Positions 1-41,249 of a stretch of DNA of 64,000 bases are shown here, in pieces. The stretch is from Auanema rhodensis. Taxonomy: Eukaryota; Animalia; Nematoda. The position numbers and the translations under genes are program-made. Positions within the stretch are counted from its first letter, which is position 1. The number at the start of each line of letters is the position of its first letter. Location: assembly GCA_964057225.1 (NCBI GenBank), contig OZ059900.1:23064001-23128000 (forward strand), given 5' to 3'. Below the pieces are notes generated by a model that was not told the origin of the DNA, did no database searches, and saw only the letters and a program-made list of their open reading frames with translations.

Positions 1-684
1 TTTGTTCATATGAGTCGTCAAATGCAACGAATTTCAGCGTGTTACATACTAAAATGAAGCATTTTACATGCTGAACACTAGAAAAATACAAAAACACAGT
101 ATTTCCTATGAGAAATATTTTATTATGCTGGAAAACCAGTTTTTGGAAATTTCGCTGTAAACAAGGTTTTGACTTACGATTTCATGTGTTCAAACTCATG
201 CAATGTCAATGAAACCTAGCTCAAAATTGTTCGTACAACGTCTAGTTCCACTTTCACGACAAAAAAACAGGGGTTAGAAAATTAAGGAAATTAGCATATT
301 CTGAGGGCACGCCCCTTATGGCTAATATTGATTAAATCGATTTTTGTTCATATGAGTCGTCAAATGCAACGAATTTCAGCGTGTTACATACTAAAATGAA
401 GCATTTTACATGCTGAACACTGAAAGAATACAAAAACACAGTATTTCTCATGAGAAATATTTTATTATGCTGGAAAACCAGTTTTTGGAAATTTCGCTGT
501 AAACAAGGTTTTGACTTACGATTTCATGTGTTCAAACTCATGCAATGTCAATGAAACTTGGCTCAAAATTGTTCGTACAACGTCTAGTTCCACTTTCACG
601 ACAAAAAAACAGGGGTTAGAAAATTAAGGAAATTAGCATATTCTGAGGGCACGCCCCTTATGGCTAATATTGATTAAATCGATT

Positions 685-3422
685 TTTGTTCATATGAGTC
701 GTCAAATGCAACGAATTTCAGCGTGTTACATACTAAAATGAAGCATTTTACATGCTGAACACTAGAAAAATACAAAAACACAGTATTTCCTATGAGAAAT
801 ATTTTATTATGCTGGAAAACCAGTTTTTGGAAATTTCGCTGTAAACAAGGTTTTGACTTACGATTTCATGTGTTCAAACTCATGCAATGTCAATGAAACC
901 TAGCTCAAAATTGTTCGTACAACGTCTAGTTCCACTTTCACGACAAAAAAACAGGGGTTAGAAAATTAAGGAAATTAGCATATTCTGAGGGCACGCCCCT
1001 TATGGCTAATATTGATTAAATCGATTTTTGTTCATATGAGTCGTCAAATGCAACGAATTTCAGCGTGTTACATACTAAAATGAAGCATTTAACATGCTGA
1101 ACACTAGAAAAATACAAAAACACAGTATTTCTCATGAGAAATATTTTATTATGCTGGAAAACCAGTTTTTGGAAATTTCGCTGTAAACAAGGTTTTGACT
1201 TACGATTTCATGTGTTCAAACTCATGCAATGTCAATGAAACCTAGCTCAAAATTGTTTGTACAACGTCTAGTTCCACTTTCACGACAAAAAAACAGGGGT
1301 TAGAAAATTAAGGAAATTAGCATATTCTGAGGGCACGCCCCTTATGGCTAATATTGATTAAATCGATTTTTTGTTCATATGAGTCGTCAAATGCAACGAA
1401 TTTCAGCGTGTTACATACTAAAATGAAGCATTTTACATGCTGAACACTAGAAAAATACAAAAACACAGTATTTCCCATGAGAAATTATTTATTATGCTGG
1501 AAAACCAGTTTTTGGAAATTTCGCTGTAAACAAGGTTTTGACTTACGATTTCATGTGTTCAAACTCATGCAATGTCAATGAAACCTAGCTCAAAATTGTT
1601 CGTACAACGTCTAGTTCCACTTTCACGACAAAAAAACAAGGGTTAGAAAATTAAGGAAATTAGCATATTCTGAGGGCACGCCCCTTATGGCTAATATTGA
1701 TTAAATCGATTTTTGTTCATATGAGTCGTCAAATGCAACGAATTTCAGCGTGTTACATACTAAAATGAAGCATTTTACATGCTGAACACTAGAAAAATAC
1801 AAAAACACAGTATTTCCCATGAGAAATATTTTATTATGCTGGAAAACCAGTTTTTGGAAATTTCGCTGTAAACAAGGTTTTGACTTACGATTTCATGTGT
1901 TCAAACTCATGCAATGTCAATGAAACCTAGCTCAAAATTGTTCGTACAACGTCTAGTTCCACTTTCACGACAAAAAAACAGGGGTTAGAAAATTAAGGAA
2001 ATTAGCATATTCTGAGGGCACGCCCCTTATGGCTAATATTGATTAAATCGATTTTTGTTCATATGAGTCGTCAAATGCAACGAATTTCAGCGTGTTACAT
2101 ACTAAAATGAAGCATTTTACATGCTGAACACTAGAAAAATACAAAAACACAGTATTTCCTATGAGAAATATTTTATTATGCTGGAAAACCAGTTTTTGGA
2201 AATTTCGCTGTAAACAAGGTTTTGACTTACGATTTCATGTGTTCAAACTCATGCAATGTCAATGAAACCTAGCTCAAAATTGTTCGTACAACGTCTAGTT
2301 CCACTTTCACGACAAAAAAACAGGGGTTAGAAAATTAAGGAAATTAGCATATTCTGAGGGCACGCCCCTTATGGCTAATATTGATTAAATCGATTTTTGT
2401 TCATATGAGTCGTCAAATGCAACGAATTTCAGCGTGTTACATACTAAAATGAAGCATTTAACATGCTGAACACTAGAAAAATACAAAAACACAGTATTTC
2501 TCATGAGAAATATTTTATTATGCTGGAAAACCAGTTTTTGGAAATTTCGCTGTAAACAAGGTTTTGACTTACGATTTCATGTGTTCAAACTCATGCAATG
2601 TCAATGAAACCTAGCTCAAAATTGTTTGTACAACGTCTAGTTCCACTTTCACGACAAAAAAACAGGGGTTAGAAAATTAAGGAAATTAGCATATTCTGAG
2701 GGCACGCCCCTTATGGCTAATATTGATTAAATCGATTTTTTGTTCATATGAGTCGTCAAATGCAACGAATTTCAGCGTGTTACATACTAAAATGAAGCAT
2801 TTTACATGCTGAACACTAGAAAAATACAAAAACACAGTATTTCCCATGAGAAATTATTTATTATGCTGGAAAACCAGTTTTTGGAAATTTCGCTGTAAAC
2901 AAGGTTTTGACTTACGATTTCATGTGTTCAAACTCATGCAATGTCAATGAAACCTAGCTCAAAATTGTTCGTACAACGTCTAGTTCCACTTTCACGACAA
3001 AAAAACAAGGGTTAGAAAATTAAGGAAATTAGCATATTCTGAGGGCACGCCCCTTATGGCTAATATTGATTAAATCGATTTTTGTTCATATGAGTCGTCA
3101 AATGCAACGAATTTCAGCGTGTTACATACTAAAATGAAGCATTTTACATGCTGAACACTAGAAAAATACAAAAACACAGTATTTCCCATGAGAAATATTT
3201 TATTATGCTGGAAAACCAGTTTTTGGAAATTTCGCTGTAAACAAGGTTTTGACTTACGATTTCATGTGTTCAAACTCATGCAATGTCAATGAAACCTAGC
3301 TCAAAATTGTTCGTACAACGTCTAGTTCCACTTTCACGACAAAAAAACAGGGGTTAGAAAATTAAGGAAATTAGCATATTCTGAGGGCACGCCCCTTATG
3401 GCTAATATTGATTAAATCGATT
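685..3422 (+). repeat. Local 4-mer HOR of satellite A, 1369 bp x2 (mirrored at 37406-40143)
   Basis: The variant series (cctatg; tttaacatg+ctcatg+ttgtttg+extra T; aattattt+caaggg; consensus) repeats at +1369. Confidence 0.9.
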
Positions 3423-4448
3423 TTTGTTCATATGAGTCGTCAAATGCAACGAATTTCAGCGTGTTACATATTAAAATGAAGCATTTAACATGCTGAACAC
3501 TAAAAAAATACAAAAACACAGTATTTCCTATGAGAAATATTTTATTATGCTGGAAAACCAGTTTTTGGAAATTTCGCTGTAAACAAGGTTTTGACTTACG
3601 ATTTCATGTGTTCAAACTCATGCAATGTCAATGAAACCTAGCTCAAAATTGTTCGTACAACGTCTAGTTCCACTTTCACGACAAAAAAACAGGGGTTAGA
3701 AAATTAAGGAAATTAGCATATTCTGAGGGCACGCCCCTTATGGCTAATATTGATTAAATCGATTTTTGTTCATATGAGTCGTCAAATGCAACGAATTTCA
3801 GCGTGTTACATACTAACATGAAGCATTTTACATGCTGAACACTAAAAGAATACAAAAACACAGTATTTCCCATGAGAAATATTTTATTATGCTGGAAAAC
3901 CAGTTTTTGGAAATTTCGCTGTAAACAAGGTTTTGACTTACGATTTCATGTGTTCAAACTCATGCAATGTCAATGAAACCTAGCTCAAAATTGTTCGTAC
4001 AACGTCTAGTTCCACTTTCACGACAAAAAAACAGGGGTTAGAAAATTAAGGAAATTAGCATATTCTGAGGGCACGCCCCTTATGGCTAATATTGATTAAA
4101 TCGATTTTTGTTCATATGAGTCGTCAAATGCAACGAATTTCAGCGTGTTACATACTAAAATGAAGCATTTTACATGCTGAACACTAGAAAAATACAAAAA
4201 CACAGTATTTCCCATGAGAAATATTTTATTATGCTGGAAAACCAGTTTTTGGAAATTTCGCTGTAAACAAGGTTTTGACTTACGATTTCATGTGTTCAAA
4301 CTCATGCAATGTCAATGAAACCTAGCTCAAAATTGTTCGTACAACGTCTAGTTCCACTTTCACGACAAAAAAACAGGGGTTAGAAAATTAAGGAAATTAG
4401 CATATTCTGAGGGCACGCCCCTTATGGCTAATATTGATTAAATCGATT

Positions 4449-7400
4449 TTTGTTCATATGAGTCGTCAAATGCAACGAATTTCAGCGTGTTACATACTAA
4501 AATGAAGCATTTTACATGCTGAACACTAGAAAAATACAAAAACACAGTATTTCCCATGAGAAATATTTTATTATGCTGGAAAACCAGTTTTTGGAAATTT
4601 CGCTGTAAACAAGGTTTTGACTTACGATTTCATGTGTTCAAACTCATGCAATGTCAATGAAACTTGGCTCAAAATTGTTCGTACAACGTCTAGTTCCACT
4701 TTCACGACAAAAAAACAGGGGTTAGAAAATTAAGGAAATTAGCATATTCTGAGGGCACGCCCCTTATGGCTAATATTGATTAAATCGATTTTTGTTCATA
4801 TGAGTCGTCAAATGCAACGAATTTCAGCGTGTTACATACTAAAATGAAGCATTTTACATGCTGAACACTAGAAAAATACAAAAACACAGTATTTCCTATG
4901 AGAAATATTTTATTATGCTGGAAAACCAGTTTTTGGAAATTTCGCTGTAAACAAGGTTTTGACTTACGATTTCATGTGTTCAAACTCATGCAATGTCAAT
5001 GAAACCTAGCTCAAAATTGTTCGTACAACGTCTAGTTCCACTTTCACGACAAAAAAACAGGGGTTAGAAAATTAAGGAAATTAGCATATTCTGAGGGCAC
5101 GCCCCTTATGGCTAATATTGATTAAATCGATTTTTGTTCATATGAGTCGTCAAATGCAACGAATTTCAGCGTGTTACATACTAAAATGAAGCATTTTACA
5201 TGCTGAACACTAGAAAAATACAAAAACACAGTATTTCTCATGAGAAATATTTTATTATGCTGGAAAACCAGTTTTTGGAAATTTCGCTGTAAACAAGGTT
5301 TTGACTTACGATTTCATGTGTTCAAACTCATGCAATGTCAATGAAACCTAGCTCAAAATTGTTTGTACAACGTCTAGTTCCACTTTCACGACAAAAAAAC
5401 AAGGGTTAGAAAATTAAGGAAATTAGCATATTCTGAGGGCACGCCCCTTATGGCTAATATTGATTAAATCGATTTTTGTTCATATGAGTCGTCAAATGCA
5501 AGGAATTTCAGCGTGTTACATACTAAAATGAAGCATTTTACATGCTGAACACTAGAAAAATACAAAAACACAGTATTTCCCATGAGAAATATTTTATTAT
5601 GCTGGAAAACCAGTTTTTGGAAATTTCGCTGTAAACAAGGTTTTGACTTACGATTTCATGTGTTCAAACTCATGCAATGTCAATGAAACCTAGCTCAAAA
5701 TTGTTCGTACAACGTCTAGTTCCACTTTCACGACAAAAAAACAGGGGTTAGAAAATTAAGGAAATTAGCTTATTCTGAGGCACGCCCCTTATGGCTAATA
5801 TTGATTAAATCGATTTTTGTTCATATGAGTCGTCAAATGCAACGAATTTCAGCGTGTTACATACTAAAATGAAGCATTTTACATGCTGAACACTAGAAAA
5901 ATACAAAAACACAGTATTTCCCATGAGAAATATTTTATTATGCTGGAAAACCAGTTTTTGAAAATTTCGCTGTAAACAAAGTTTTGACTTACGATTGCAT
6001 GTGTTCAAACTCATGCAATGTCAATGAAACCTAGCTCAAAATTGTTCGTACAACGTCTAGTTCCACTTTCACGACAAAAAAACAGGGGTTAGAAAATTAA
6101 GGAAATTAGCATATTCTGAGGGCACGCCCCTTATGGCTAATATTGATTAAATCGATTTTTGTTCATATGAGTCGTCAAATGCAACGAATTTCAGCGTGTT
6201 ACATACTAAAATGAAGCATTTTACATGCTGAACACTAGAAAAATACAAAAACACAGTATTTCCCATGAGAAATATTTTATTGAGCTGGAAAACCAGTTTT
6301 TGGAAATTTCGCTGTAAACAAGGTTTTGACTTACGATTTCATGTGTTCAAACTCATGCAATGTCAATGAAACCTAGCTCAAAATTGTTCGTACAACGTCT
6401 AGTTCCACTTTCACGACAAAAAAACAGGGGTTAGAAAATTAAGGAAATTAGCATATTCTGAGGGCACGCCCCTTATGGCTAATATTGATTAAATCGATTT
6501 TTGTTCATATGAGTCGTCAAATGCAACGAATTTCAGCGTGTTACATACTAAAATGAAGCATTTTACATGCTGAACACTAGAAAAATACAAAAACACAGTA
6601 TTTCCCATGAGAAATATTTTATTATGCTGGAAAACCAGTTTTTGGAAATTTCGCTGTAAACAAGGTTTTGACTTACGATTTCATGTGTTCAAACTCATGC
6701 AATGTCAATGAAACTTGGCTCAAAATTGTTCGTACAACGTCTAGTTCCACTTTCACGACAAAAAAACAGGGGTTAGAAAATTAAGGAAATTAGCATATTC
6801 TGAGGGCACGCCCCTTATGGCTAATATTGATTAAATCGATTTTTGTTCATATGAGTCGTCAAATGCAACGAATTTCAGCGTGTTACATACTAAAATGAAG
6901 CATTTTACATGCTGAACACTAGAAAAATACAAAAACACAGTATTTCCTATGAGAAATATTTTATTATGCTGGAAAACCAGTTTTTGGAAATTTCGCTGTA
7001 AACAAGGTTTTGACTTACGATTTCATGTGTTCAAACTCATGCAATGTCAATGAAACCTAGCTCAAAATTGTTCGTACAACGTCTAGTTCCACTTTCACGA
7101 CAAAAAAACAGGGGTTAGAAAATTAAGGAAATTAGCATATTCTGAGGGCACGCCCCTTATGGCTAATATTGATTAAATCGATTTTTGTTCATATGAGTCG
7201 TCAAATGCAACGAATTTCAGCGTGTTACATACTAAAATGAAGCATTTTACATGCTGAACACTAGAAAAATACAAAAACACAGTATTTCTCATGAGAAATA
7301 TTTTATTATGCTGGAAAACCAGTTTTTGGAAATTTCGCTGTAAACAAGGTTTTGACTTACGATTTCATGTGTTCAAACTCATGCAATGTCAATGAAACCT

Positions 7401-8550
7401 AGCTCAAAATTGTTTGTACAACGTCTAGTTCCACTTTCACGACAAAAAAACAAGGGTTAGAAAATTAAGGAAATTAGCATATTCTGAGGGCACGCCCCTT
7501 ATGGCTAATATTGATTAAATCGATTTTTGTTCATATGAGTCGTCAAATGCAAGGAATTTCAGCGTGTTACATACTAAAATGAAGCATTTTACATGCTGAA
7601 CACTAGAAAAATACAAAAACACAGTATTTCCCATGAGAAATATTTTATTATGCTGGAAAACCAGTTTTTGGAAATTTCGCTGTAAACAAGGTTTTGACTT
7701 ACGATTTCATGTGTTCAAACTCATGCAATGTCAATGAAACCTAGCTCAAAATTGTTCGTACAACGTCTAGTTCCACTTTCACGACAAAAAAACAGGGGTT
7801 AGAAAATTAAGGAAATTAGCTTATTCTGAGGCACGCCCCTTATGGCTAATATTGATTAAATCGATTTTTGTTCATATGAGTCGTCAAATGCAACGAATTT
7901 CAGCGTGTTACATACTAAAATGAAGCATTTTACATGCTGAACACTAGAAAAATACAAAAACACAGTATTTCCCATGAGAAATATTTTATTATGCTGGAAA
8001 ACCAGTTTTTGAAAATTTCGCTGTAAACAAAGTTTTGACTTACGATTGCATGTGTTCAAACTCATGCAATGTCAATGAAACCTAGCTCAAAATTGTTCGT
8101 ACAACGTCTAGTTCCACTTTCACGACAAAAAAACAGGGGTTAGAAAATTAAGGAAATTAGCATATTCTGAGGGCACGCCCCTTATGGCTAATATTGATTA
8201 AATCGATTTTTGTTCATATGAGTCGTCAAATGCAACGAATTTCAGCGTGTTACATACTAAAATGAAGCATTTTACATGCTGAACACTAGAAAAATACAAA
8301 AACACAGTATTTCCCATGAGAAATATTTTATTGAGCTGGAAAACCAGTTTTTGGAAATTTCGCTGTAAACAAGGTTTTGACTTACGATTTCATGTGTTCA
8401 AACTCATGCAATGTCAATGAAACCTAGCTCAAAATTGTTCGTACAACGTCTAGTTCCACTTTCACGACAAAAAAACAGGGGTTAGAAAATTAAGGAAATT
8501 AGCATATTCTGAGGGCACGCCCCTTATGGCTAATATTGATTAAATCGATT
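4449..8550 (+). repeat. Local 6-mer HOR of satellite A, 2051 bp x2 (mirrored at 32278-36379)
   Basis: Markers acttggc, caaggaat, gcttattctgaggcac (1-bp deletion), the ORF haplotype (5805 and 7856) and ttgagctg all repeat at +2051. Confidence 0.92.
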
Positions 8551-9917
8551 TTTGTTCATATGAGTCGTCAAATGCAACGAATTTCAGCGTGTTACATACT
8601 CAAATGAAGCATTTTACATGCTGAACACTAGAAAAATACAAAAACACAGTATTTCCCATGAGAAATATTTTATTATGCTGGAAAACCAGTTTTTGGAAAT
8701 TTCGCTGTAAACAAGGCTTTGACTTACGATTTCATGTGTTCAAACTCATGCAATGTCAATGAAACCTAGCTCAAAATTGTTCGTACAACGTCTAGTTCCA
8801 CTTTCACGACAAAAAAACAAGGGTTAGAAAATTAAGGAAATTAGCATATTCTGAGGGCACGCCCCTTATGGCTAATATTGATTAAATCGATTTTTGTTCA
8901 TATGAGTCGTCAAATGCAACGAATTTCAGCGTGTTACATACTAAAATGAAGCATTTTACATGCTGAACACTAGAAAAATACAAAAACACAGTATTTCCCA
9001 TGAGAAATATTTTATTATGCTGGAAAACCAGTTTTTGGAAATTTCGCTGTAAACAAGGTTTTGACTTACGATTTCATGTGTTCAAACTCATGCAATGTCA
9101 ATGAAACCTAGCTCAAAATTGTTCGTACAACGTCTAGTTCCACTTTCACGACAAAAAAATAGGGGTTAGAAAATTAAGGAAATTAGCTTATTCTGAGGCA
9201 CGCCCCTTATGGCTAATATTGATTAAATCGATTTTTGTTCATATGAGTCGTCAAATGCAACGAATTTCAGCGTGTTACATACTAAAATGAAGCATTTTAC
9301 ATGCTGAACACTAGAAAAATACAAAAACACAGTATTTCTCATGAGAAATATTTTATTATGCTGGAAAACCAGTTTTTGAAAATTTCGCTGTAAACAAAGT
9401 TTTGACTTACGATTGCATGTGTTCAAACTCATGCAATGTCAATGAAACCTAGCTCAAAATTGTTCGTACAACGTCTAGTTCCACTTTCACGACAAAAAAA
9501 CAGGGGTTAGAAAATTAAGGAAATTAGCATATTCTGAGGGCACGCCCCTTATGGCTAATATTGATTAAATCGATTTTTGTTCATATGAGTCGTCAAATGC
9601 AACGAATTTCAGCGTGTTACATACTAAAATGAAGCATTTTACATGCTGAACACTAGAAAAATACAAAAACACAGTATTTCCCATGAGAAATATTTTATTG
9701 AGCTGGAAAACCAGTTTTTGGAAATTTCGCTGTAAACAAGGTTTTGACTTACGATTTCATGTGTTCAAACTCATGCAATGTCAATGAAACCTAGCTCAAA
9801 ATTGTTCGTACAACGTCTAGTTCCACTTTCACGACAAAAAAACAGGGGTTAGAAAATTAAGGAAATTAGCATATTCTGAGGGCACGCCCCTCATGGCTAA
9901 TATTGATTAAATCGATT

Positions 9918-12900
9918 TTTGTTCATATGAGTCGTCAAATGCAACGAATTTCAGCGTGTTACATACTAAAATGAAGCATTTTACATGCTGAACACTAGAA
10001 AAATACAAAAACACAGTATTTCCCATGAGAAATATTTTATTATGCTGGAAAACCAGTTTTAGCATATTCTGAGGGCACGCCCCTTATGGCTAATATTGAT
10101 TAAATCGATTTTTGTTCATATGAGTCGTCAAATGCAACGAATTTCAGCGTGTTACATACTAAAATGAAGCATTTTACATGCTGAACACTAGAAAAATACA
10201 AAAACACAGTATTTCCCATGAGAAATATTTTATTGAGCTGGAAAACCAGTTTTTGGAAATTTCGCTGTAAACAAGGTTTTGACTTACGATTTCATGTGTT
10301 CAAACTCATGCAATGTCAATGAAACCTAGCTCAAAATTGTTCGTACAACGTCTAGTTCCACTTTCACGACAAAAAAACAGGGGTTAGAAAATTAAGGAAA
10401 TTAGCATATTCTGAGGGCACGCCCCTTATGGCTAATATTGATTAAATCGATTTTTGTTCATATGAGTCGTCAAATGCAACGAATTTCAGCGTGTTACATA
10501 CTCAAATGAAGCATTTTACATGCTGAAAACTAGAAAAATACAAAAACACAGTATTTCCCATGAGAAATATTTTATTATGCTGGAAAACCAGTTTTTGGAA
10601 ATTTCGCTGTAAACAAGGTTTTGACTTACGATTTCATGTGTTCAAACTCATGCAATGTCAATGAAACCTAGCTCAAAATTGTTCGTACAACGTCTAGTTC
10701 CACTTTCACGACAAAAAAACAGGGGTTAGAAAATTAAGGAAATTAGCATATTCTGAGGGCACGCCCCTTATGGCTAATATTGATTAAATCGATTTTTGTT
10801 CATATGAGTCGTCAAATGCAACGAATTTCAGCGTGTTACATACTAAAATGAAGCATTTTACATGCTGAACACTAGAAAAATACAAAAACACAGTATTTCC
10901 CATGAGAAATATTTTATTATGCTGGAAAACCAGTTTTTGGAAATTTCGCTGTAAACAAGGTTTTGACTTACGATTTCATGTGTTCAAACTCATGCAATGT
11001 CAATGAAACCTAGCTCAAAATTGTTCGTACAACGTCTAGTTCCACTTTCACGACAAAAAAACAGGGGTTAGAAAATTAAGGAAATTAGCATATTCTGAGG
11101 GCACGCCCCTTATGGCTAATATTGATTAAATCGATTTTTGTTCATATGAGTCGTCAAATGCAACGAATTTCAGCGTGTTACATACTAAAATGAAGCATTT
11201 TACATGCTGAACACTAGAAAAATACAAAAACACAGTATTTCCCATGAGAAATATTTTATTGAGCTGGAAAACCAGTTTTTGGAAATTTCGCTGTAAACAA
11301 GGTTTTGACTTACGATTTCATGTGTTCAAACTCATGCAATGTCAATGAAACCTAGCTCAAAATTGTTCGTACAACGTCTAGTTCCACTTTCACGACAAAA
11401 AAACAGGGGTTAGAAAATTAAGGAAATTAGCATATTCTGAGGGCACGCCCCTTATGGCTAATATTGATTAAATCGATTTTTGTTCATATGAGTCGTCAAA
11501 TGCAACGAATTTCAGCGTGTTACATACTAAAATGAAGCATTTTACATGCTGAACACTAGAAAAATACAAAAACACAGTATTTCCCATGAGAAATATTTTA
11601 TTATGCTGGAAAACCAGTTTTAGCATATTCTGAGGGCACGCCCCTTATGGCTAATATTGATTAAATCGATTTTTGTTCATATGAGTCGTCAAATGCAACG
11701 AATTTCAGCGTGTTACATACTAAAATGAAGCATTTTACATGCTGAACACTAGAAAAATACAAAAACACAGTATTTCCCATGAGAAATATTTTATTGAGCT
11801 GGAAAACCAGTTTTTGGAAATTTCGCTGTAAACAAGGTTTTGACTTACGATTTCATGTGTTCAAACTCATGCAATGTCAATGAAACCTAGCTCAAAATTG
11901 TTCGTACAACGTCTAGTTCCACTTTCACGACAAAAAAACAGGGGTTAGAAAATTAAGGAAATTAGCATATTCTGAGGGCACGCCCCTTATGGCTAATATT
12001 GATTAAATCGATTTTTGTTCATATGAGTCGTCAAATGCAACGAATTTCAGCGTGTTACATACTCAAATGAAGCATTTTACATGCTGAAAACTAGAAAAAT
12101 ACAAAAACACAGTATTTCCCATGAGAAATATTTTATTATGCTGGAAAACCAGTTTTTGGAAATTTCGCTGTAAACAAGGTTTTGACTTACGATTTCATGT
12201 GTTCAAACTCATGCAATGTCAATGAAACCTAGCTCAAAATTGTTCGTACAACGTCTAATTCCACTTTCACGACAAAAAAACAGGGGTTAGAAAATTAAGG
12301 AAATTAGCATATTCTGAGGGCACGCCCCTTATGGCTAATATTGATTAAATCGATTTTTGTTCATATGAGTCGTCAAATGCAACGAATTTCAGCGTGTTAC
12401 ATACTAAAATGAAGCATTTTACATGCTGAACACTAGAAAAATACAAAAACACAGTATTTCCCATGAGAAATATTTTATTGAGCTGGAAAACCAGTTTTTG
12501 GAAATTTCGCTGTAAACAAGGTTTTGACTTACGATTTCATGTGTTCAAACTCATGCAATGTCAATGAAACCTAGCTCAAAATTGTTCGTACAACGTCTAG
12601 TTCCACTTTCACGACAAAAAAACAGGGGTTAGAAAATTAAGGAAATTAGCATATTCTGAGGGCACGCCCCTTATGGCTAATATTGATTAAATCGATTTTT
12701 GTTCATATGAGTCGTCAAATGCAACGAATTTCAGCGTGTTACATACTAAAATGAAGCATTTTACATGCTGAACACTAGAAAAATACAAAAACACAGTATT
12801 TCCCATGAGAAATATTTTATTATGCTGGAAAACCAGTTTTAGCATATTCTGAGGGCACGCCCCTTATGGCTAATATTGATTAAATCGATTTTTGTTCATA

Positions 12901-13425
12901 TGAGTCGTCAAATGCAACGAATTTCAGCGTGTTACATACTAAAATGAAGCATTTTACATGCTGAACACTAGAAAAATACAAAAACACAGTATTTCCCATG
13001 AGAAATATTTTATTATGCTGGAAAACCAGTTTTTGGAAATTTCGCTGTAAACAAGGTTTTGACTTACGATTTCATGTGTTCAAACTCATGCAATGTCAAT
13101 GAAACCTAGCTCAAAATTGTTCGTACAACGTCTAGTTCCACTTTCACGACAAAAAAACAGGGGTTAGAAAATTAAGGAAATTAGCATATTCTGAGGGCAC
13201 GCCCCTTATGGCTAATATTGATTAAATCGATTTTTGTTCATATGAGTCGTCAAATGCAACGAATTTCAGCGTGTTACATACTAAAATGAAGCATTTTACA
13301 TGCTGAACACTAGAAAAATACAAAAACACAGTATTTCCCATGAGAAATATTTTATTATGCTGGAAAACCAGTTTTAGCATATTCTGAGGGCACGCCCCTT
13401 ATGGCTAATATTGATTAAATCGATT
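9918..13425 (+). repeat. Region with four 193-bp deleted monomers (9918, 11479, 12698, 13233) sharing one 149-bp deletion
   Basis: Identical junction aaccagtttt|agcatattct at 10060, 11621, 12840 and 13375. Confidence 0.95.
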
Positions 13426-15353
13426 TTTGTTCATATGAGTCGTCAAATGCAACGAATTTCAGCGTGTTACATACTAAAATGAAGCATTTTACATGCTGAA
13501 CACTAGAAAAATACAAAAACACAGTATTTCTCATGAGAAATATTTTATTATGCTGGAAAACCAGTTTTTGGAAATTTCGCTGTAAACAAGGTTTTGACTT
13601 ACGATTTCATGTGTTCAAACTCATGCAATGTCAATGAAACCTAGCTCAAAATTGTTTGTACAACGTCTAGTTCCACTTTCACGACAAAAAAACAGGGGTT
13701 AGAAAATTAAGGAAATTAGCATATTCTGAGGGCACGCCCCTTATGGCTAATATTGATTAAATCGATTTTTGTTCATATGAGTAGTCAAATGCAACGAATT
13801 TCAGCGTGTTACATACTTAAATGAAGCATTTTACATGCTGAACACTAGAAAAATACAAAAACACAGTATTTCCCATGAGAAATATTTTATTATGCTGGAA
13901 ACCAGTTTTTGGAATTTTCGCTGTAAACAAGGTTTTGACTTACGATTTCATGTGTTCAAACTCATGCAATGTCAATGAAACCTAGCTCAAAATTGTTCCT
14001 ACAACGTCTAATTCCACTTTCACGACAAAAAAACAGGGGTTAGAAAATTTAGGAAATTAGCATATTCTGAGGGCACGCCCCTTATGGCTAATATTGATTA
14101 AATCGATTTTTGTTCATATAAGTCGTCAAATGCAACGAATTTCAGCGTGTTACATACTAAAATGAAGTATTTTACATGCTGAACACTAGAAAAATACAAA
14201 AACACAGTATTTCCCATGAGAAATATTTTATTATGCTGGAAAACCAGTTTTTGGAAATTTCGCTGTAAACAAGGTTATGACTTACGATTTCATGTGTTCA
14301 AACTCATGCAATGTCAATGAAACCTAGCTCAAAATTGTTCGTACAACGTCTAGTTCCACTTTCACGACAAAAAAACAGGGGTTAGAAAATTTAGGAAATT
14401 AGCATATTCTGAGGGCACGCCCCTTATGGCTAATATTGATTAAATCGATTTTTGTTCATATGAGTCGTCAAGTGCAACGAATTTCAGCGTGTTACATACT
14501 AAAATGAAGTATTTTACATGCTGAACACTAGAAAAATACAAAAACACAGTATTTCCCATGAGAAATATTTTATTATGCTGGAAAACCAGTTTGAAAATTT
14601 CGCTGTAAACAAAGTTTTGACTTACGATTGCATGTGTTCAAACTCATGCAATGTCAATGAAACCTAGCTCAAAATTGTTCGTACAACGTCTAGTTCCACT
14701 TTCACGACAAAAAAACAGGGGTTAGAAAATTAAGGAAATTAGCATATTCTGAGGGCACGCCCCTTATGGCTAATATTGATTAAATCGATTTTTGTTCATA
14801 TGAGTCGTCAAATGCAACGAATTTCAGCGTGTTACATACTAAAATGAAGCATTTTACATGCTGAACACTAGAAAAATACAAAAACACAGTATTTCCCATG
14901 AGAAATATTTTATTGAGCTGGAAAACCAGTTTTTGGAAATTTCGCTGTAAACAAGGTTTTGACTTACGATTTCATGTGTTCAAACTCATACAATGTCAAT
15001 GAAACCTAGCTCAAAATTGTTCGTACAACGTCTAGTTCCACTTTCACGACAAAAAAACAGGGGTTAGAAAATTAAGGAAATTAGCATATTCTGAGGGCAC
15101 GCCCCTTATGGCTAATATTGATTAAATCGATTTTTGTTCATATGAGTCGTCAAATGCAACGAATTTCAGCGTGTTACATACTAAAATGAAGCATTTTACA
15201 TGCTGAACACTAGAAAAATACAAAAACACAGTATTTCCCATGAGAAATATTTTATTATGCTGGAAAACCAGTTTTTGAAAATTTCGCTGTAAACAAAGTT
15301 TTGACTTACGATTGCATGTGTTCAAACTCATGCATAGTCAATGAAACCTAGCT

Positions 15354-30400: not shown

Positions 30401-30910
30401 AAGGGGCGTGCCCTCAGAATATGCTAATTTCCTTAATTTTCTAACCCCTGTTTTTTTGTCGTGAAAGTGGAACTAGACGTTGTACGAACAATTTTGAGCT
30501 AGGTTTCATTGACATTGCATGAGTTTGAACACATGAAATCGTAAGTCAAAACCTTGTTTACAGCGAAATTTCCAAAAACTGGTTTTCCAGCTCAATAAAA
30601 TATTTCTCATGGGAAATACTGTGTTTTTGTATTTTTCTAGTGTTCAGCATGTAAAATGCTTCATTTTAGTATGTAACACGCTGAAATTCGTTGCATTTGA
30701 CGACTCATATGAACAAAAATCGATTTAATCAATATTAGCCATAAGGGGCGTGCCCTCAGAATATGCTAAAACTGGTTTTCCAGCATAATAAAATATTTCT
30801 CATGGGAAATACTGTGTTTTTGTATTTTTCTAGTGTTCAGCATGTAAAATGCTTCATTTTAGTATGTAACACGCTGAAATTCGTTGCATTTGACGACTCA
30901 TATGAACAAA
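27403..30910 (-). repeat. Mirror copy of the four 193-bp deleted monomers
   Basis: Junction agaatatgct|aaaactgg at about 27453, 27988, 29207 and 30768, each equal to 40828 minus the left-arm position. Confidence 0.95.
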
Positions 30911-33900
30911 AATCGATTTAATCAATATTAGCCATGAGGGGCGTGCCCTCAGAATATGCTAATTTCCTTAATTTTCTAACCCCTGTTTTTTTGTCGTGAA
31001 AGTGGAACTAGACGTTGTACGAACAATTTTGAGCTAGGTTTCATTGACATTGCATGAGTTTGAACACATGAAATCGTAAGTCAAAACCTTGTTTACAGCG
31101 AAATTTCCAAAAACTGGTTTTCCAGCTCAATAAAATATTTCTCATGGGAAATACTGTGTTTTTGTATTTTTCTAGTGTTCAGCATGTAAAATGCTTCATT
31201 TTAGTATGTAACACGCTGAAATTCGTTGCATTTGACGACTCATATGAACAAAAATCGATTTAATCAATATTAGCCATAAGGGGCGTGCCCTCAGAATATG
31301 CTAATTTCCTTAATTTTCTAACCCCTGTTTTTTTGTCGTGAAAGTGGAACTAGACGTTGTACGAACAATTTTGAGCTAGGTTTCATTGACATTGCATGAG
31401 TTTGAACACATGCAATCGTAAGTCAAAACTTTGTTTACAGCGAAATTTTCAAAAACTGGTTTTCCAGCATAATAAAATATTTCTCATGAGAAATACTGTG
31501 TTTTTGTATTTTTCTAGTGTTCAGCATGTAAAATGCTTCATTTTAGTATGTAACACGCTGAAATTCGTTGCATTTGACGACTCATATGAACAAAAATCGA
31601 TTTAATCAATATTAGCCATAAGGGGCGTGCCTCAGAATAAGCTAATTTCCTTAATTTTCTAACCCCTATTTTTTTGTCGTGAAAGTGGAACTAGACGTTG
31701 TACGAACAATTTTGAGCTAGGTTTCATTGACATTGCATGAGTTTGAACACATGAAATCGTAAGTCAAAACCTTGTTTACAGCGAAATTTCCAAAAACTGG
31801 TTTTCCAGCATAATAAAATATTTCTCATGGGAAATACTGTGTTTTTGTATTTTTCTAGTGTTCAGCATGTAAAATGCTTCATTTTAGTATGTAACACGCT
31901 GAAATTCGTTGCATTTGACGACTCATATGAACAAAAATCGATTTAATCAATATTAGCCATAAGGGGCGTGCCCTCAGAATATGCTAATTTCCTTAATTTT
32001 CTAACCCTTGTTTTTTTGTCGTGAAAGTGGAACTAGACGTTGTACGAACAATTTTGAGCTAGGTTTCATTGACATTGCATGAGTTTGAACACATGAAATC
32101 GTAAGTCAAAGCCTTGTTTACAGCGAAATTTCCAAAAACTGGTTTTCCAGCATAATAAAATATTTCTCATGGGAAATACTGTGTTTTTGTATTTTTCTAG
32201 TGTTCAGCATGTAAAATGCTTCATTTGAGTATGTAACACGCTGAAATTCGTTGCATTTGACGACTCATATGAACAAAAATCGATTTAATCAATATTAGCC
32301 ATAAGGGGCGTGCCCTCAGAATATGCTAATTTCCTTAATTTTCTAACCCCTGTTTTTTTGTCGTGAAAGTGGAACTAGACGTTGTACGAACAATTTTGAG
32401 CTAGGTTTCATTGACATTGCATGAGTTTGAACACATGAAATCGTAAGTCAAAACCTTGTTTACAGCGAAATTTCCAAAAACTGGTTTTCCAGCTCAATAA
32501 AATATTTCTCATGGGAAATACTGTGTTTTTGTATTTTTCTAGTGTTCAGCATGTAAAATGCTTCATTTTAGTATGTAACACGCTGAAATTCGTTGCATTT
32601 GACGACTCATATGAACAAAAATCGATTTAATCAATATTAGCCATAAGGGGCGTGCCCTCAGAATATGCTAATTTCCTTAATTTTCTAACCCCTGTTTTTT
32701 TGTCGTGAAAGTGGAACTAGACGTTGTACGAACAATTTTGAGCTAGGTTTCATTGACATTGCATGAGTTTGAACACATGCAATCGTAAGTCAAAACTTTG
32801 TTTACAGCGAAATTTTCAAAAACTGGTTTTCCAGCATAATAAAATATTTCTCATGGGAAATACTGTGTTTTTGTATTTTTCTAGTGTTCAGCATGTAAAA
32901 TGCTTCATTTTAGTATGTAACACGCTGAAATTCGTTGCATTTGACGACTCATATGAACAAAAATCGATTTAATCAATATTAGCCATAAGGGGCGTGCCTC
33001 AGAATAAGCTAATTTCCTTAATTTTCTAACCCCTGTTTTTTTGTCGTGAAAGTGGAACTAGACGTTGTACGAACAATTTTGAGCTAGGTTTCATTGACAT
33101 TGCATGAGTTTGAACACATGAAATCGTAAGTCAAAACCTTGTTTACAGCGAAATTTCCAAAAACTGGTTTTCCAGCATAATAAAATATTTCTCATGGGAA
33201 ATACTGTGTTTTTGTATTTTTCTAGTGTTCAGCATGTAAAATGCTTCATTTTAGTATGTAACACGCTGAAATTCCTTGCATTTGACGACTCATATGAACA
33301 AAAATCGATTTAATCAATATTAGCCATAAGGGGCGTGCCCTCAGAATATGCTAATTTCCTTAATTTTCTAACCCTTGTTTTTTTGTCGTGAAAGTGGAAC
33401 TAGACGTTGTACAAACAATTTTGAGCTAGGTTTCATTGACATTGCATGAGTTTGAACACATGAAATCGTAAGTCAAAACCTTGTTTACAGCGAAATTTCC
33501 AAAAACTGGTTTTCCAGCATAATAAAATATTTCTCATGAGAAATACTGTGTTTTTGTATTTTTCTAGTGTTCAGCATGTAAAATGCTTCATTTTAGTATG
33601 TAACACGCTGAAATTCGTTGCATTTGACGACTCATATGAACAAAAATCGATTTAATCAATATTAGCCATAAGGGGCGTGCCCTCAGAATATGCTAATTTC
33701 CTTAATTTTCTAACCCCTGTTTTTTTGTCGTGAAAGTGGAACTAGACGTTGTACGAACAATTTTGAGCTAGGTTTCATTGACATTGCATGAGTTTGAACA
33801 CATGAAATCGTAAGTCAAAACCTTGTTTACAGCGAAATTTCCAAAAACTGGTTTTCCAGCATAATAAAATATTTCTCATAGGAAATACTGTGTTTTTGTA

Positions 33901-36900
33901 TTTTTCTAGTGTTCAGCATGTAAAATGCTTCATTTTAGTATGTAACACGCTGAAATTCGTTGCATTTGACGACTCATATGAACAAAAATCGATTTAATCA
34001 ATATTAGCCATAAGGGGCGTGCCCTCAGAATATGCTAATTTCCTTAATTTTCTAACCCCTGTTTTTTTGTCGTGAAAGTGGAACTAGACGTTGTACGAAC
34101 AATTTTGAGCCAAGTTTCATTGACATTGCATGAGTTTGAACACATGAAATCGTAAGTCAAAACCTTGTTTACAGCGAAATTTCCAAAAACTGGTTTTCCA
34201 GCATAATAAAATATTTCTCATGGGAAATACTGTGTTTTTGTATTTTTCTAGTGTTCAGCATGTAAAATGCTTCATTTTAGTATGTAACACGCTGAAATTC
34301 GTTGCATTTGACGACTCATATGAACAAAAATCGATTTAATCAATATTAGCCATAAGGGGCGTGCCCTCAGAATATGCTAATTTCCTTAATTTTCTAACCC
34401 CTGTTTTTTTGTCGTGAAAGTGGAACTAGACGTTGTACGAACAATTTTGAGCTAGGTTTCATTGACATTGCATGAGTTTGAACACATGAAATCGTAAGTC
34501 AAAACCTTGTTTACAGCGAAATTTCCAAAAACTGGTTTTCCAGCTCAATAAAATATTTCTCATGGGAAATACTGTGTTTTTGTATTTTTCTAGTGTTCAG
34601 CATGTAAAATGCTTCATTTTAGTATGTAACACGCTGAAATTCGTTGCATTTGACGACTCATATGAACAAAAATCGATTTAATCAATATTAGCCATAAGGG
34701 GCGTGCCCTCAGAATATGCTAATTTCCTTAATTTTCTAACCCCTGTTTTTTTGTCGTGAAAGTGGAACTAGACGTTGTACGAACAATTTTGAGCTAGGTT
34801 TCATTGACATTGCATGAGTTTGAACACATGCAATCGTAAGTCAAAACTTTGTTTACAGCGAAATTTTCAAAAACTGGTTTTCCAGCATAATAAAATATTT
34901 CTCATGGGAAATACTGTGTTTTTGTATTTTTCTAGTGTTCAGCATGTAAAATGCTTCATTTTAGTATGTAACACGCTGAAATTCGTTGCATTTGACGACT
35001 CATATGAACAAAAATCGATTTAATCAATATTAGCCATAAGGGGCGTGCCTCAGAATAAGCTAATTTCCTTAATTTTCTAACCCCTGTTTTTTTGTCGTGA
35101 AAGTGGAACTAGACGTTGTACGAACAATTTTGAGCTAGGTTTCATTGACATTGCATGAGTTTGAACACATGAAATCGTAAGTCAAAACCTTGTTTACAGC
35201 GAAATTTCCAAAAACTGGTTTTCCAGCATAATAAAATATTTCTCATGGGAAATACTGTGTTTTTGTATTTTTCTAGTGTTCAGCATGTAAAATGCTTCAT
35301 TTTAGTATGTAACACGCTGAAATTCCTTGCATTTGACGACTCATATGAACAAAAATCGATTTAATCAATATTAGCCATAAGGGGCGTGCCCTCAGAATAT
35401 GCTAATTTCCTTAATTTTCTAACCCTTGTTTTTTTGTCGTGAAAGTGGAACTAGACGTTGTACAAACAATTTTGAGCTAGGTTTCATTGACATTGCATGA
35501 GTTTGAACACATGAAATCGTAAGTCAAAACCTTGTTTACAGCGAAATTTCCAAAAACTGGTTTTCCAGCATAATAAAATATTTCTCATGAGAAATACTGT
35601 GTTTTTGTATTTTTCTAGTGTTCAGCATGTAAAATGCTTCATTTTAGTATGTAACACGCTGAAATTCGTTGCATTTGACGACTCATATGAACAAAAATCG
35701 ATTTAATCAATATTAGCCATAAGGGGCGTGCCCTCAGAATATGCTAATTTCCTTAATTTTCTAACCCCTGTTTTTTTGTCGTGAAAGTGGAACTAGACGT
35801 TGTACGAACAATTTTGAGCTAGGTTTCATTGACATTGCATGAGTTTGAACACATGAAATCGTAAGTCAAAACCTTGTTTACAGCGAAATTTCCAAAAACT
35901 GGTTTTCCAGCATAATAAAATATTTCTCATAGGAAATACTGTGTTTTTGTATTTTTCTAGTGTTCAGCATGTAAAATGCTTCATTTTAGTATGTAACACG
36001 CTGAAATTCGTTGCATTTGACGACTCATATGAACAAAAATCGATTTAATCAATATTAGCCATAAGGGGCGTGCCCTCAGAATATGCTAATTTCCTTAATT
36101 TTCTAACCCCTGTTTTTTTGTCGTGAAAGTGGAACTAGACGTTGTACGAACAATTTTGAGCCAAGTTTCATTGACATTGCATGAGTTTGAACACATGAAA
36201 TCGTAAGTCAAAACCTTGTTTACAGCGAAATTTCCAAAAACTGGTTTTCCAGCATAATAAAATATTTCTCATGGGAAATACTGTGTTTTTGTATTTTTCT
36301 AGTGTTCAGCATGTAAAATGCTTCATTTTAGTATGTAACACGCTGAAATTCGTTGCATTTGACGACTCATATGAACAAAAATCGATTTAATCAATATTAG
36401 CCATAAGGGGCGTGCCCTCAGAATATGCTAATTTCCTTAATTTTCTAACCCCTGTTTTTTTGTCGTGAAAGTGGAACTAGACGTTGTACGAACAATTTTG
36501 AGCTAGGTTTCATTGACATTGCATGAGTTTGAACACATGAAATCGTAAGTCAAAACCTTGTTTACAGCGAAATTTCCAAAAACTGGTTTTCCAGCATAAT
36601 AAAATATTTCTCATGGGAAATACTGTGTTTTTGTATTTTTCTAGTGTTCAGCATGTAAAATGCTTCATTTTAGTATGTAACACGCTGAAATTCGTTGCAT
36701 TTGACGACTCATATGAACAAAAATCGATTTAATCAATATTAGCCATAAGGGGCGTGCCCTCAGAATATGCTAATTTCCTTAATTTTCTAACCCCTGTTTT
36801 TTTGTCGTGAAAGTGGAACTAGACGTTGTACGAACAATTTTGAGCTAGGTTTCATTGACATTGCATGAGTTTGAACACATGAAATCGTAAGTCAAAACCT

Positions 36901-39900
36901 TGTTTACAGCGAAATTTCCAAAAACTGGTTTTCCAGCATAATAAAATATTTCTCATGGGAAATACTGTGTTTTTGTATTCTTTTAGTGTTCAGCATGTAA
37001 AATGCTTCATGTTAGTATGTAACACGCTGAAATTCGTTGCATTTGACGACTCATATGAACAAAAATCGATTTAATCAATATTAGCCATAAGGGGCGTGCC
37101 CTCAGAATATGCTAATTTCCTTAATTTTCTAACCCCTGTTTTTTTGTCGTGAAAGTGGAACTAGACGTTGTACGAACAATTTTGAGCTAGGTTTCATTGA
37201 CATTGCATGAGTTTGAACACATGAAATCGTAAGTCAAAACCTTGTTTACAGCGAAATTTCCAAAAACTGGTTTTCCAGCATAATAAAATATTTCTCATAG
37301 GAAATACTGTGTTTTTGTATTTTTTTAGTGTTCAGCATGTTAAATGCTTCATTTTAGTATGTAACACGCTGAAATTCGTTGCATTTGACGACTCATATGA
37401 ACAAAAATCGATTTAATCAATATTAGCCATAAGGGGCGTGCCCTCAGAATATGCTAATTTCCTTAATTTTCTAACCCCTGTTTTTTTGTCGTGAAAGTGG
37501 AACTAGACGTTGTACGAACAATTTTGAGCTAGGTTTCATTGACATTGCATGAGTTTGAACACATGAAATCGTAAGTCAAAACCTTGTTTACAGCGAAATT
37601 TCCAAAAACTGGTTTTCCAGCATAATAAAATATTTCTCATGGGAAATACTGTGTTTTTGTATTTTTCTAGTGTTCAGCATGTAAAATGCTTCATTTTAGT
37701 ATGTAACACGCTGAAATTCGTTGCATTTGACGACTCATATGAACAAAAATCGATTTAATCAATATTAGCCATAAGGGGCGTGCCCTCAGAATATGCTAAT
37801 TTCCTTAATTTTCTAACCCTTGTTTTTTTGTCGTGAAAGTGGAACTAGACGTTGTACGAACAATTTTGAGCTAGGTTCCATTGACATTGCATGAGTTTGA
37901 ACACATGAAATCGTAAGTCAAAACCTTGTTTACAGCGAAATTTCCAAAAACTGGTTTTCCAGCATAATAAATAATTTCTCATGGGAAATACTGTGTTTTT
38001 GTATTTTTCTAGTGTTCAGCATGTAAAATGCTTCATTTTAGTATGTAACACGCTGAAATTCGTTGCATTTGACGACTCATATGAACAAAAAATCGATTTA
38101 ATCAATATTAGCCATAAGGGGCGTGCCCTCAGAATATGCTAATTTCCTTAATTTTCTAACCCCTGTTTTTTTGTCGTGAAAGTGGAACTAGACGTTGTAC
38201 AAACAATTTTGAGCTAGGTTTCATTGACATTGCATGAGTTTGAACACATGAAATCGTAAGTCAAAACCTTGTTTACAGCGAAATTTCCAAAAACTGGTTT
38301 TCCAGCATAATAAAATATTTCTCATGAGAAATACTGTGTTTTTGTATTTTTCTAGTGTTCAGCATGTTAAATGCTTCATTTTAGTATGTAACACGCTGAA
38401 ATTCGTTGCATTTGACGACTCATATGAACAAAAATCGATTTAATCAATATTAGCCATAAGGGGCGTGCCCTCAGAATATGCTAATTTCCTTAATTTTCTA
38501 ACCCCTGTTTTTTTGTCGTGAAAGTGGAACTAGACGTTGTACGAACAATTTTGAGCTAGGTTTCATTGACATTGCATGAGTTTGAACACATGAAATCGTA
38601 AGTCAAAACCTTGTTTACAGCGAAATTTCCAAAAACTGGTTTTCCAGCATAATAAAATATTTCTCATAGGAAATACTGTGTTTTTGTATTTTTCTAGTGT
38701 TCAGCATGTAAAATGCTTCATTTTAGTATGTAACACGCTGAAATTCGTTGCATTTGACGACTCATATGAACAAAAATCGATTTAATCAATATTAGCCATA
38801 AGGGGCGTGCCCTCAGAATATGCTAATTTCCTTAATTTTCTAACCCCTGTTTTTTTGTCGTGAAAGTGGAACTAGACGTTGTACGAACAATTTTGAGCTA
38901 GGTTTCATTGACATTGCATGAGTTTGAACACATGAAATCGTAAGTCAAAACCTTGTTTACAGCGAAATTTCCAAAAACTGGTTTTCCAGCATAATAAAAT
39001 ATTTCTCATGGGAAATACTGTGTTTTTGTATTTTTCTAGTGTTCAGCATGTAAAATGCTTCATTTTAGTATGTAACACGCTGAAATTCGTTGCATTTGAC
39101 GACTCATATGAACAAAAATCGATTTAATCAATATTAGCCATAAGGGGCGTGCCCTCAGAATATGCTAATTTCCTTAATTTTCTAACCCTTGTTTTTTTGT
39201 CGTGAAAGTGGAACTAGACGTTGTACGAACAATTTTGAGCTAGGTTTCATTGATATTGCATGAGTTTGAACACATGAAATCGTAAGTCAAAACCTTGTTT
39301 ACAGCGAAATTTCCAAAAACTGGTTTTCCAGCATAATAAATAATTTCTCATGGGAAATACTGTGTTTTTGTATTTTTCTAGTGTTCAGCATGTAAAATGC
39401 TTCATTTTAGTATGTAACACGCTGAAATTCGTTGCATTTGACGACTCATATGAACAAAAAATCGATTTAATCAATATTAGCCATAAGGGGCGTGCCCTCA
39501 GAATATGCTAATTTCCTTAATTTTCTAACCCCTGTTTTTTTGTCGTGAAAGTGGAACTAGACGTTGTACAAACAATTTTGAGCTAGGTTTCATTGACATT
39601 GCATGAGTTTGAACACATGAAATCGTAAGTCAAAACCTTGTTTACAGCGAAATTTCCAAAAACTGGTTTTCCAGCATAATAAAATATTTCTCATGAGAAA
39701 TACTGTGTTTTTGTATTTTTCTAGTGTTCAGCATGTTAAATGCTTCATTTTAGTATGTAACACGCTGAAATTCGTTGCATTTGACGACTCATATGAACAA
39801 AAATCGATTTAATCAATATTAGCCATAAGGGGCGTGCCCTCAGAATATGCTAATTTCCTTAATTTTCTAACCCCTGTTTTTTTGTCGTGAAAGTGGAACT

Positions 39901-41249
39901 AGACGTTGTACGAACAATTTTGAGCTAGGTTTCATTGACATTGCATGAGTTTGAACACATGAAATCGTAAGTCAAAACCTTGTTTACAGCGAAATTTCCA
40001 AAAACTGGTTTTCCAGCATAATAAAATATTTCTCATAGGAAATACTGTGTTTTTGTATTTTTCTAGTGTTCAGCATGTAAAATGCTTCATTTTAGTATGT
40101 AACACGCTGAAATTCGTTGCATTTGACGACTCATATGAACAAAAATCGATTTAATCAATATTAGCCATAAGGGGCGTGCCCTCAGAATATGCTAATTTCC
40201 TTAATTTTCTAACCCCTGTTTTTTTGTCGTGAAAGTGGAACTAGACGTTGTACGAACAATTTTGAGCCAAGTTTCATTGACATTGCATGAGTTTGAACAC
40301 ATGAAATCGTAAGTCAAAACCTTGTTTACAGCGAAATTTCCAAAAACTGGTTTTCCAGCATAATAAAATATTTCTCATGAGAAATACTGTGTTTTTGTAT
40401 TCTTTCAGTGTTCAGCATGTAAAATGCTTCATTTTAGTATGTAACACGCTGAAATTCGTTGCATTTGACGACTCATATGAACAAAAATCGATTTAATCAA
40501 TATTAGCCATAAGGGGCGTGCCCTCAGAATATGCTAATTTCCTTAATTTTCTAACCCCTGTTTTTTTGTCGTGAAAGTGGAACTAGACGTTGTACGAACA
40601 ATTTTGAGCTAGGTTTCATTGACATTGCATGAGTTTGAACACATGAAATCGTAAGTCAAAACCTTGTTTACAGCGAAATTTCCAAAAACTGGTTTTCCAG
40701 CATAATAAAATATTTCTCATAGGAAATACTGTGTTTTTGTATTTTTCTAGTGTTCAGCATGTAAAATGCTTCATTTTAGTATGTAACACGCTGAAATTCG
40801 TTGCATTTGACGACTCATATGAACAAAAATCGATTTAATCAATATTAGCCATAAGGGGCGTGCCCTCAGAATATGCTAATTTCCTTAATTTTCTAACCCC
40901 TGTTTTTTTGTCGTGAAAGTGGAACTAGACGTTGTACGAACAATTTTGAGCTAGGTTTCATTGACATTGCATGAGTTTGAACACATGAAATCGTAAGTCA
41001 AAACCTTGTTTACAGCGAAATTTCCAAAAACTGGTTTTCCAGCATAATAAAATATTTCTCATGGGAAATACTGTGTTTTTGTATTTTTCTAGTGTTCAGC
41101 ATGTAAAATGCTTCATTTTAGTATGTAACACGCTGAAATTCGTTGCATTTGACGACTCATATGAACAAAAATCGATTTAATCAATATTAGCCATAAGGGG
41201 CGTGCCCTCAGAATATGCTAATTTCCTTAATTTTCTAACCCTTGTTTTT

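Follow-up and report, generated by a model that had tools for sequence, protein, structure and literature searches.

Analysis of a 64-kb stretch of the Auanema rhodense genome (assembly GCA_964057225.1, contig OZ059900.1, positions 23,064,001 to 23,128,000; hereafter the window) revealed a near-perfect palindrome of at least 40.8 kb composed of two tandem satellites, A and B. Satellite A matches XT-2, a repeat family of the X-chromosome ends that is restricted to the germline. We conclude that the palindrome is probably a real and recent inverted duplication within an XT-2 block, generated by fold-back or template switching and copied from the right arm to the left arm.

In an ungapped mirror comparison, in which each base i was set against the complement of base 40828-i, positions 1-20339 were the reverse complement of positions 20489-40827, with 12 substitutions, no indels and a constant register of i+j=40828. 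This register was unique, with an identity of 99.96% over the first 15 kb, compared with 82% when the register was displaced by ±342 bp and at most 68% elsewhere. The window contains no N, and the palindrome lies within contiguous sequence; position 1 of the window truncates the left arm, so the length of 40.8 kb is a lower bound. Tandem Repeats Finder (TRF) gave a layout that agrees with the mirror comparison, assigning 1-15353 (+) and 25475-64000 (-) to satellite A (342 bp) and 15354-20339 (+) and 20339-25474 (-) to satellite B (232 bp, with a 457-bp dimer). The palindrome and its register had been proposed in a preliminary description made from the sequence letters, and both were confirmed here. 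So were two further elements of that description: truncated A monomers mirrored in both arms, which TRF recovered as four 193-bp copies (for example, 9866-10253 versus 30575-30962), and higher-order repeats (HORs) to the right of position 40828, which were present at all of the lags given (1368, 2395, 3418 and 1026 bp). The mirror-image identity of the arms excludes a simple two-break inversion. The view that the structure is a copied inverted duplication, and more than a strand switch within an array, is upheld by the unique register and by a spacer and joint of the kind seen in fold-back and template-switch events.

The identity of satellite A was established with the fluorescence in situ hybridization (FISH) probes listed in the Methods of Gonzalez de la Rosa et al. 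2026 (bioRxiv 10.64898/2026.08.27.747507). The 27-nt XT-2 'X-elim' probe occurs in satellite A once per 342-bp monomer, with 150 exact and 161 near matches where 0 were expected, and the AT-1, XR-1 and XT-1 FISH probe sequences were not found in the window. By this match, satellite A is identified as XT-2, and the locus would accordingly lie within an X-terminal block of tandem repeats, which the germline retains and the soma loses. According to the preprint text, the XT-2 family as a whole shows low, germline-only read coverage and a FISH signal that is lost from somatic nuclei. The same source describes multi-megabase tandem-repeat blocks in A. rhodense with units of 167-504 nt, the X having families of its own, on chromosomes of the rhabditid type that are fragmented by programmed elimination, and an X that does not recombine in hermaphrodites. 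The monomers of satellite A thus resemble the published family in each carrying the exact 27-nt probe. They differ in arrangement, as XT-2 blocks are presented as plain tandem repeats in the searched preprint text and are palindromic here; in that text the word 'palindromic' is used for a 29-bp SFE break motif only, and nothing was found on an inverted organisation of repeat blocks.

This setting bears on two origins that had been suggested for the palindrome, an isochromosome and a B chromosome. Neither was supported, as satellite A belongs by its probe match to an X-specific germline-restricted family, and centromere function in rhabditid nematodes is described as distributed, that is, holocentric (PMC8022731). 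A centromere core of the Schizosaccharomyces pombe type, or an isochromosome axis, was also considered and found no support, since the core here is itself tandem satellite, arranged head to head with a 149-bp spacer, in a holocentric group.

The mirror copying proposed in the preliminary description held, but the symmetry of the axis did not. A single strand-switch joint was found at 20339/20340, where B(+), ending ...CGCGAGTT, meets a mid-monomer B(-) starting GTTCATGAAG...; the joint is out of monomer phase, with microhomology of at most 1 nt. It is followed by a single-copy spacer (20340-20488) that is unpaired in the mirror comparison and whose 149 bp comprise 91 bp of a partial monomer, B22, and the last 58 bp of monomer B21. 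The 91-bp B22 part corresponds to a normal monomer of the B01/B06/B16 type, and no internal inverted repeat was found within the 149-bp spacer. The spacer is neither foreign nor diverged sequence but carries on the right-hand B(-) array in phase. Fold-back inverted duplications have the same anatomy, with inverted arms on either side of a short single-copy spacer and one joint that is almost free of homology.

The final 62 bp of the left arm hold four of the 12 mismatches (20278, 20299, 20315 and 20318). This 62-bp patch (20278-20339) is identical to monomer B05 at 24152-24213 and to the mirror of that segment at 16615-16676, and the exact match indicates that the four central differences represent a switch between monomer variants and not mutations. 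Mutations from error-prone synthesis were considered as their source and rejected, because the four differences jointly reproduce an existing monomer variant. This leaves eight of the 12 mismatches as differences between the arms proper.

Comparison of the monomers on either side of the axis revealed the polarity of copying. In the right arm, B21 is coherently of the B10 type throughout, with one difference from B10, whereas its mirror in the left arm is chimeric, being of the B10 type through 20277 and of the B05 type beyond. A chimeric monomer on the left and a coherent B21 on the right indicate that the right arm was the template near the axis, and that copying proceeded from right to left.

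The centre can be parsed in two ways. [quoted passage not shown] When read as the product of two steps, it contains a 62-bp inverted repeat, matched at 58/62 positions (93.5%), that flanks the 149-bp spacer. Folding of the centre as single-stranded DNA gave a long stem with a loop of ~149 nt, at -120.7 kcal/mol (z = -19.7).

Outside the central patch, the young arms proper extend over 1-20277 and 20551-40827 and differ at 8/20277 sites (0.039%). All eight differences are singletons: the derived base was found in no other matched monomer (~40-46 A copies or ~16-22 B copies per arm), and the partner arm carries the majority base of the array at each site. These changes are not the result of mixing of paralogous monomers. 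G:C>A:T transitions account for five of the eight changes, one being at a CpG, in DNA with a GC content of 34%; spontaneous mutations in nematodes have a similar spectrum. No homopolymer length differences were detected between the arms; noise in HiFi consensus sequence consists mostly of homopolymer indels. Eight singleton changes in the absence of homopolymer indels thus point to two real molecules or segments and not to consensus noise. The longest stretch of the arms that lacks a distinguishing site is 9.2 kb (a perfect run of 9224 bp), and HiFi reads longer than this could phase the arms.

Mutation-accumulation lines of Caenorhabditis elegans put the mutation rate at about 2-3e-9 per site and generation. 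If this rate is assumed, a divergence of 0.039% would correspond to several tens of thousands of generations, and the duplication would predate the laboratory inbreeding of the strain. Since the duplication, the arms have acquired eight independent point changes and have neither gained nor lost a monomer. Arms that carry later substitutions point to an inherited, stable allele rather than a de novo lesion.

The same observations bear on whether the palindrome is an artefact, in which hifiasm would have joined a single A-B array in reverse to its own second copy via a single chimeric or hairpin-derived read or a few of them. The second copy could be a residual allelic haplotype, or reads could have been used on both sides. 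Near-identical inverted satellite arms are a typical site of assembler failure, and a divergence of 0.04% without indels would also fit two alleles of an imperfectly inbred line placed head to head. According to the preprint text, the assembly was built with hifiasm 0.16.1, purge_dups and YaHS from PacBio HiFi reads of the APS4 inbred line, was curated manually, and has a coverage of ~29x in the repeat blocks (bioRxiv 10.64898/2026.08.27.747507); this coverage and the use of purge_dups and curation leave room for such an error, whereas the inbreeding of APS4 argues against it. Fold-back reads turn symmetrically at the end of a molecule, whereas here the joint at the centre is out of phase and is accompanied by a spacer and a 62-bp variant patch, features that a read-through artefact would not produce. 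Each arm exceeds 20 kb, which is beyond any HiFi read and would need many independent reads, and the eight singleton bases are private to one arm or the other. In addition, Heinz, Meyerson and Li reported fold-back reads to be 'virtually' absent from HiFi genomic DNA data (PMC12870357). With its asymmetric centre, arms of more than 20 kb, eight singleton substitutions and lack of indels, the palindrome does not have the form of a sequencing fold-back artefact, and we regard an assembly artefact as unlikely. For users of the assembly, the locus is nevertheless a site where mis-assembly must be ruled out.

To account for the palindrome as a fold-back duplication, we propose the following sequence of events. 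The small B satellite would have suffered a double-strand break, or a fork would have collapsed within it, leaving a 3' end that paired back onto the complementary strand, either its own or that of the sister. Synthesis would then have run outward along the right arm, through B and then A, for at least 20.3 kb, with the left arm arising as the reverse complement. The non-homologous joint at 20339/20340, the 149-bp loop or spacer and the 62-bp stretch of another variant would be the scar left by initiation at the centre. In a two-step version, an older joint between B(+) and B(-) would have existed beforehand, with a diverged 62-bp inverted repeat and a 149-nt loop. Following a break at ~20277/20278, this inverted repeat would have served for fold-back annealing or for long-tract repair, and the left arm would have been overwritten or created outward. 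In a one-step version, there would have been two template switches: synthesis from the 3' end at 20340 would have used a B05-type monomer as template for its first 62 nt, and the neighbouring B21, entered in phase, thereafter. Both versions fit the window data equally. What the sequence shows is the anatomy of the palindrome, the direction of copying near the axis and which satellite family A belongs to; the break, the fold-back, the synthesis and the resolution of the outer end are postulated steps.

A related sequence of events would begin with a perfect palindrome, formed by sister-chromatid fusion or at a hairpin-capped end, which was later stabilised when its centre broke and the axis was deleted asymmetrically, with 149 bp more remaining on the right and a short repair patch on the left. 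The spacer is a continuation of one arm, as would be expected after an asymmetric central deletion, and a short tract of homologous repair could account for the 62-bp patch; structure-specific nucleases are described as attacking palindrome centres (PMC8053094). This explanation invokes two events where one suffices, and within the window its product is indistinguishable from that of a fold-back with a 149-nt loop. We consider it highly improbable, and it is a variant of the fold-back explanation and not a true alternative to it.

The fold-back explanation was compared with inverted duplications for which junctions have been sequenced. Human constitutional inverted duplications (Hermetz et al. 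2014, PMC3907307) have a non-duplicated spacer in 21/21 sequenced junctions, with 2-8 nt of inverted microhomology in 13/21 and use of inverted homologous LINE/SINE elements in 3/21, one of which involved 296 bp of 90%-identical AluY. In yeast, a double-strand break near an inverted repeat leads through foldback annealing, flap trimming and Pol delta fill-in to an inverted duplication, and a variant without a dicentric intermediate is resolved through template switching at repeats (Al-Zain et al. 2023, PMC10622511). The A. rhodense palindrome resembles the human duplications and the yeast foldback inversions in its two inverted arms, its short non-duplicated spacer at the axis, its little or, depending on the parse, homeologous inverted homology, and a synthesis polarity that can be read from the centre. 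It differs from the human cases in spacer length (149 bp, compared with 766 bp to 70 kb), and from both systems in lying wholly within tandem satellites of the germline-restricted DNA of a holocentric nematode, in showing no terminal deletion or dicentric intermediate within the window, and in having arms that carry eight later substitutions.

Under the two-step reading, the palindrome also resembles those of Tetrahymena ribosomal DNA, yeast and Chinese hamster ovary (CHO) cells, which are primed by short inverted repeats near a break (as cited in PMC3907307 and PMC10622511), and the U-turns that replication forks make at fission-yeast inverted repeats (Mizuno et al., as cited in PMC3907307). 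The likeness lies in the 62-bp, 93.5%-matched repeat with its 149-nt loop at the centre, just outside which perfect copying starts. It differs from these systems in that we infer the prior existence of the 62-bp repeat, and in that they yield whole-arm palindromic chromosomes, whereas the duplication here is presumably bounded.

Several points weigh against a fold-back duplication. The joint at 20339/20340 and the two-copy state are features of the assembly alone, and the left arm leaves the window, so that the outer junction lies outside it, and with it the evidence of how a fold-back was resolved without doubling an entire chromosome arm. The inverted microhomology of 0 nt at the spacer ends under the one-step parse falls short of the 2-8 nt in the human cases. 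The derived bases are divided 6:2 between the right and left arms, although error-prone copying similar to break-induced replication (BIR) predicts an excess in the left arm; the split is not significant. Finally, a palindrome with 20-kb arms and a 149-bp spacer would be expected to be fragile, and its persistence long enough to acquire eight substitutions needs explaining. Its survival could be owed, for example, to germline heterochromatin or to the imperfect centre.

Analysis of direct repeats within the array revealed how the palindrome compares with ordinary satellite turnover. Direct HOR copies were perfect over 2317 bp at a lag of 2051 (32228-36595; mirror 4233-8600) and over 2775 bp at a lag of 3418 (51669-57861), and reached 99.95% across 4 kb. 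The lag-2051 duplication is present in both arms and is therefore older than the palindrome. As direct copies are 100% identical over 2.3-2.8 kb, the proposition that all direct duplications are clearly older than the palindrome was rejected. These near-identical copies indicate that direct duplications of 2-4 kb remodel the array on the palindrome's timescale, and hence that 6- and 10-monomer units have continued to undergo unequal exchange over the period that saw the inverted duplication. What sets the palindrome apart is its length, with at least 20.3 kb copied at once, and its orientation, not its identity alone. A gain of at least 20.3 kb of array in one step exceeds every young direct duplication in the window (2-4 kb).

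The turnover of the array also bears on whether the palindrome could be an old structure whose arms are kept alike by ongoing gene conversion, as on the Y chromosome, and that is maintained for a role in, for example, X pairing or inheritance. The ampliconic palindromes P1-P8 of the human and ape Y, which Rozen and co-workers are said to have described in 2003, reportedly have an arm identity close to ~99.96%, similar to the 99.96% found here. Y palindromes bear genes, have spacers of kilobase scale or longer, and are conserved across species through gene conversion. The A. rhodense palindrome shares with them a location on a sex chromosome with restricted recombination, the X being non-recombining in hermaphrodites, and differs in consisting entirely of non-coding satellite, for which neither conservation nor conversion is in evidence. 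The difference-free stretch of 9.2 kb is mildly longer than expected (p ~0.07), and a role of X repeat blocks in meiotic pairing is raised as speculation in the preprint text (bioRxiv 10.64898/2026.08.27.747507). However, an open reading frame (ORF) scan detected no ORF of at least 90 aa in either satellite, no Rfam family was found in 14000-21000, a stretch that covers both satellites and the axis, and the inner 62-bp patch has not been homogenised. In an array that changes rapidly by direct duplications of 2-4 kb, arms with no register shift and no gain or loss of monomers indicate a recent event rather than an old maintained structure. The maintained macro-dyad put forward in the preliminary description thus found no support, and we regard it as very unlikely.

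A recent fold-back duplication of this kind is already known both as a process and as a structure, and the palindrome is an unusually large and clean example. What is new is the identification of the locus as putative XT-2 germline-restricted DNA, a base-level central scar that gives the polarity of copying, and arms that are a stably inherited, slightly diverged pair and not identical copies. In the searched preprint text, replication slippage or weak surveillance are the sole sources offered for eliminated repeat DNA (bioRxiv 10.64898/2026.08.27.747507). If reads confirm the palindrome, break-induced fold-back copying would also build XT-2 blocks, with one event several times the size of the nearby direct duplications. 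The growth of eliminated repeat blocks in a holocentric animal may owe a substantial part, so far undescribed, to fold-back copying. A stronger version, which we put forward only tentatively and consider rather unlikely, is that fold-back duplication, perhaps via repeated cycles of breakage and fold-back, is a major route by which the multi-megabase germline-restricted repeat blocks of A. rhodense grow and are reorganised. If so, large near-perfect palindromes would be tolerated because holocentric chromosomes form no lethal dicentric and because somatic cells lose this DNA once past the 8-cell stage; the palindrome of at least 40.8 kb would then be the youngest visible product, and could affect pairing of the X or its failure to recombine. 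The locus is also a natural test case for the survival of a long palindrome with a very short spacer in an animal germline.

Table 1. Coordinates of the palindrome and adjoining satellite DNA in the 64-kb window
Feature	Position	Strand	Basis
Left arm, satellite A (342-bp monomers, identified by probe as XT-2), with four 193-bp truncated monomers	1-15353	+	TRF; XT-2 probe; mirror of 25475-40827
Left arm, satellite B (monomers of 225/232 bp), mirrors 20551-25474 almost perfectly	15354-20277	+	TRF; monomer alignment; 2 mismatches (15717, 19545)
Innermost 62 bp of left arm, B stretch of other variant type	20278-20339	+	Monomer comparison
Strand-switch joint B(+)/B(-)	20339-20340	.	Direct sequence reading; monomer alignment
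149-bp single-copy spacer, continuing the right B(-) array in phase	20340-20488	-	Monomer alignment
Mirror partner of 62-bp patch, native part of B10-type monomer B21	20489-20550	-	B21 versus B10, 1 difference across full monomer
Right arm, satellite B	20551-25474	-	TRF; monomer alignment
Right arm, satellite A (XT-2 by probe), mirror of 1-15353	25475-40827	-	TRF; XT-2 probe; mirror comparison
Further A (XT-2 by probe) array, orientation unchanged; young HORs (lags 1368, 2395, 3418 and 1026); any mirror partner would lie upstream of the window	40828-64000	-	TRF; lag analysis

Beyond the palindrome, a stretch of ~14 kb of the A array (45952-60240) is organised as a 10-monomer HOR of 3418-3422 bp. 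A scan for 29-bp SFE-like palindromes, defined by their form alone (14+1+14, with at least 10/14 pairs), found none that recurs at the 3.4-kb HOR spacing. The telomere repeat TTAGGC, sought as three consecutive copies, was not found in the window.

The truncated A monomers each carry a 149-bp deletion and are spaced by 1561, 1219 and 535 bp (9866-13568; mirror 27260-30962). We take the equal length of this deletion and of the 149-bp spacer to be a coincidence, the spacer being B sequence and the deletions lying in A.

Satellites A and B are unrelated, as sequence comparison between them gave only chance matches of 8-20 nt. The boundary between them is abrupt, with no transition zone, at 15353/15354 and at its mirror, 25474/25475; the A monomer at this boundary is cut after ...AATGAAACCTAGCT, and B begins 4 bp into a monomer (ACTGGAAAC...). 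A 5-kb B array thereby sits at the end of an XT-2 array. Monomer alignment of B (20340-25474) revealed 232-bp and 225-bp forms that are irregularly interleaved, with the 225-bp monomers having a 7-bp alignment gap at either of two nearby places (columns 4-10 or 16-22). The B monomers appear as mosaics of a few variant blocks, and this pattern in the sequence suggests frequent short conversion among them.

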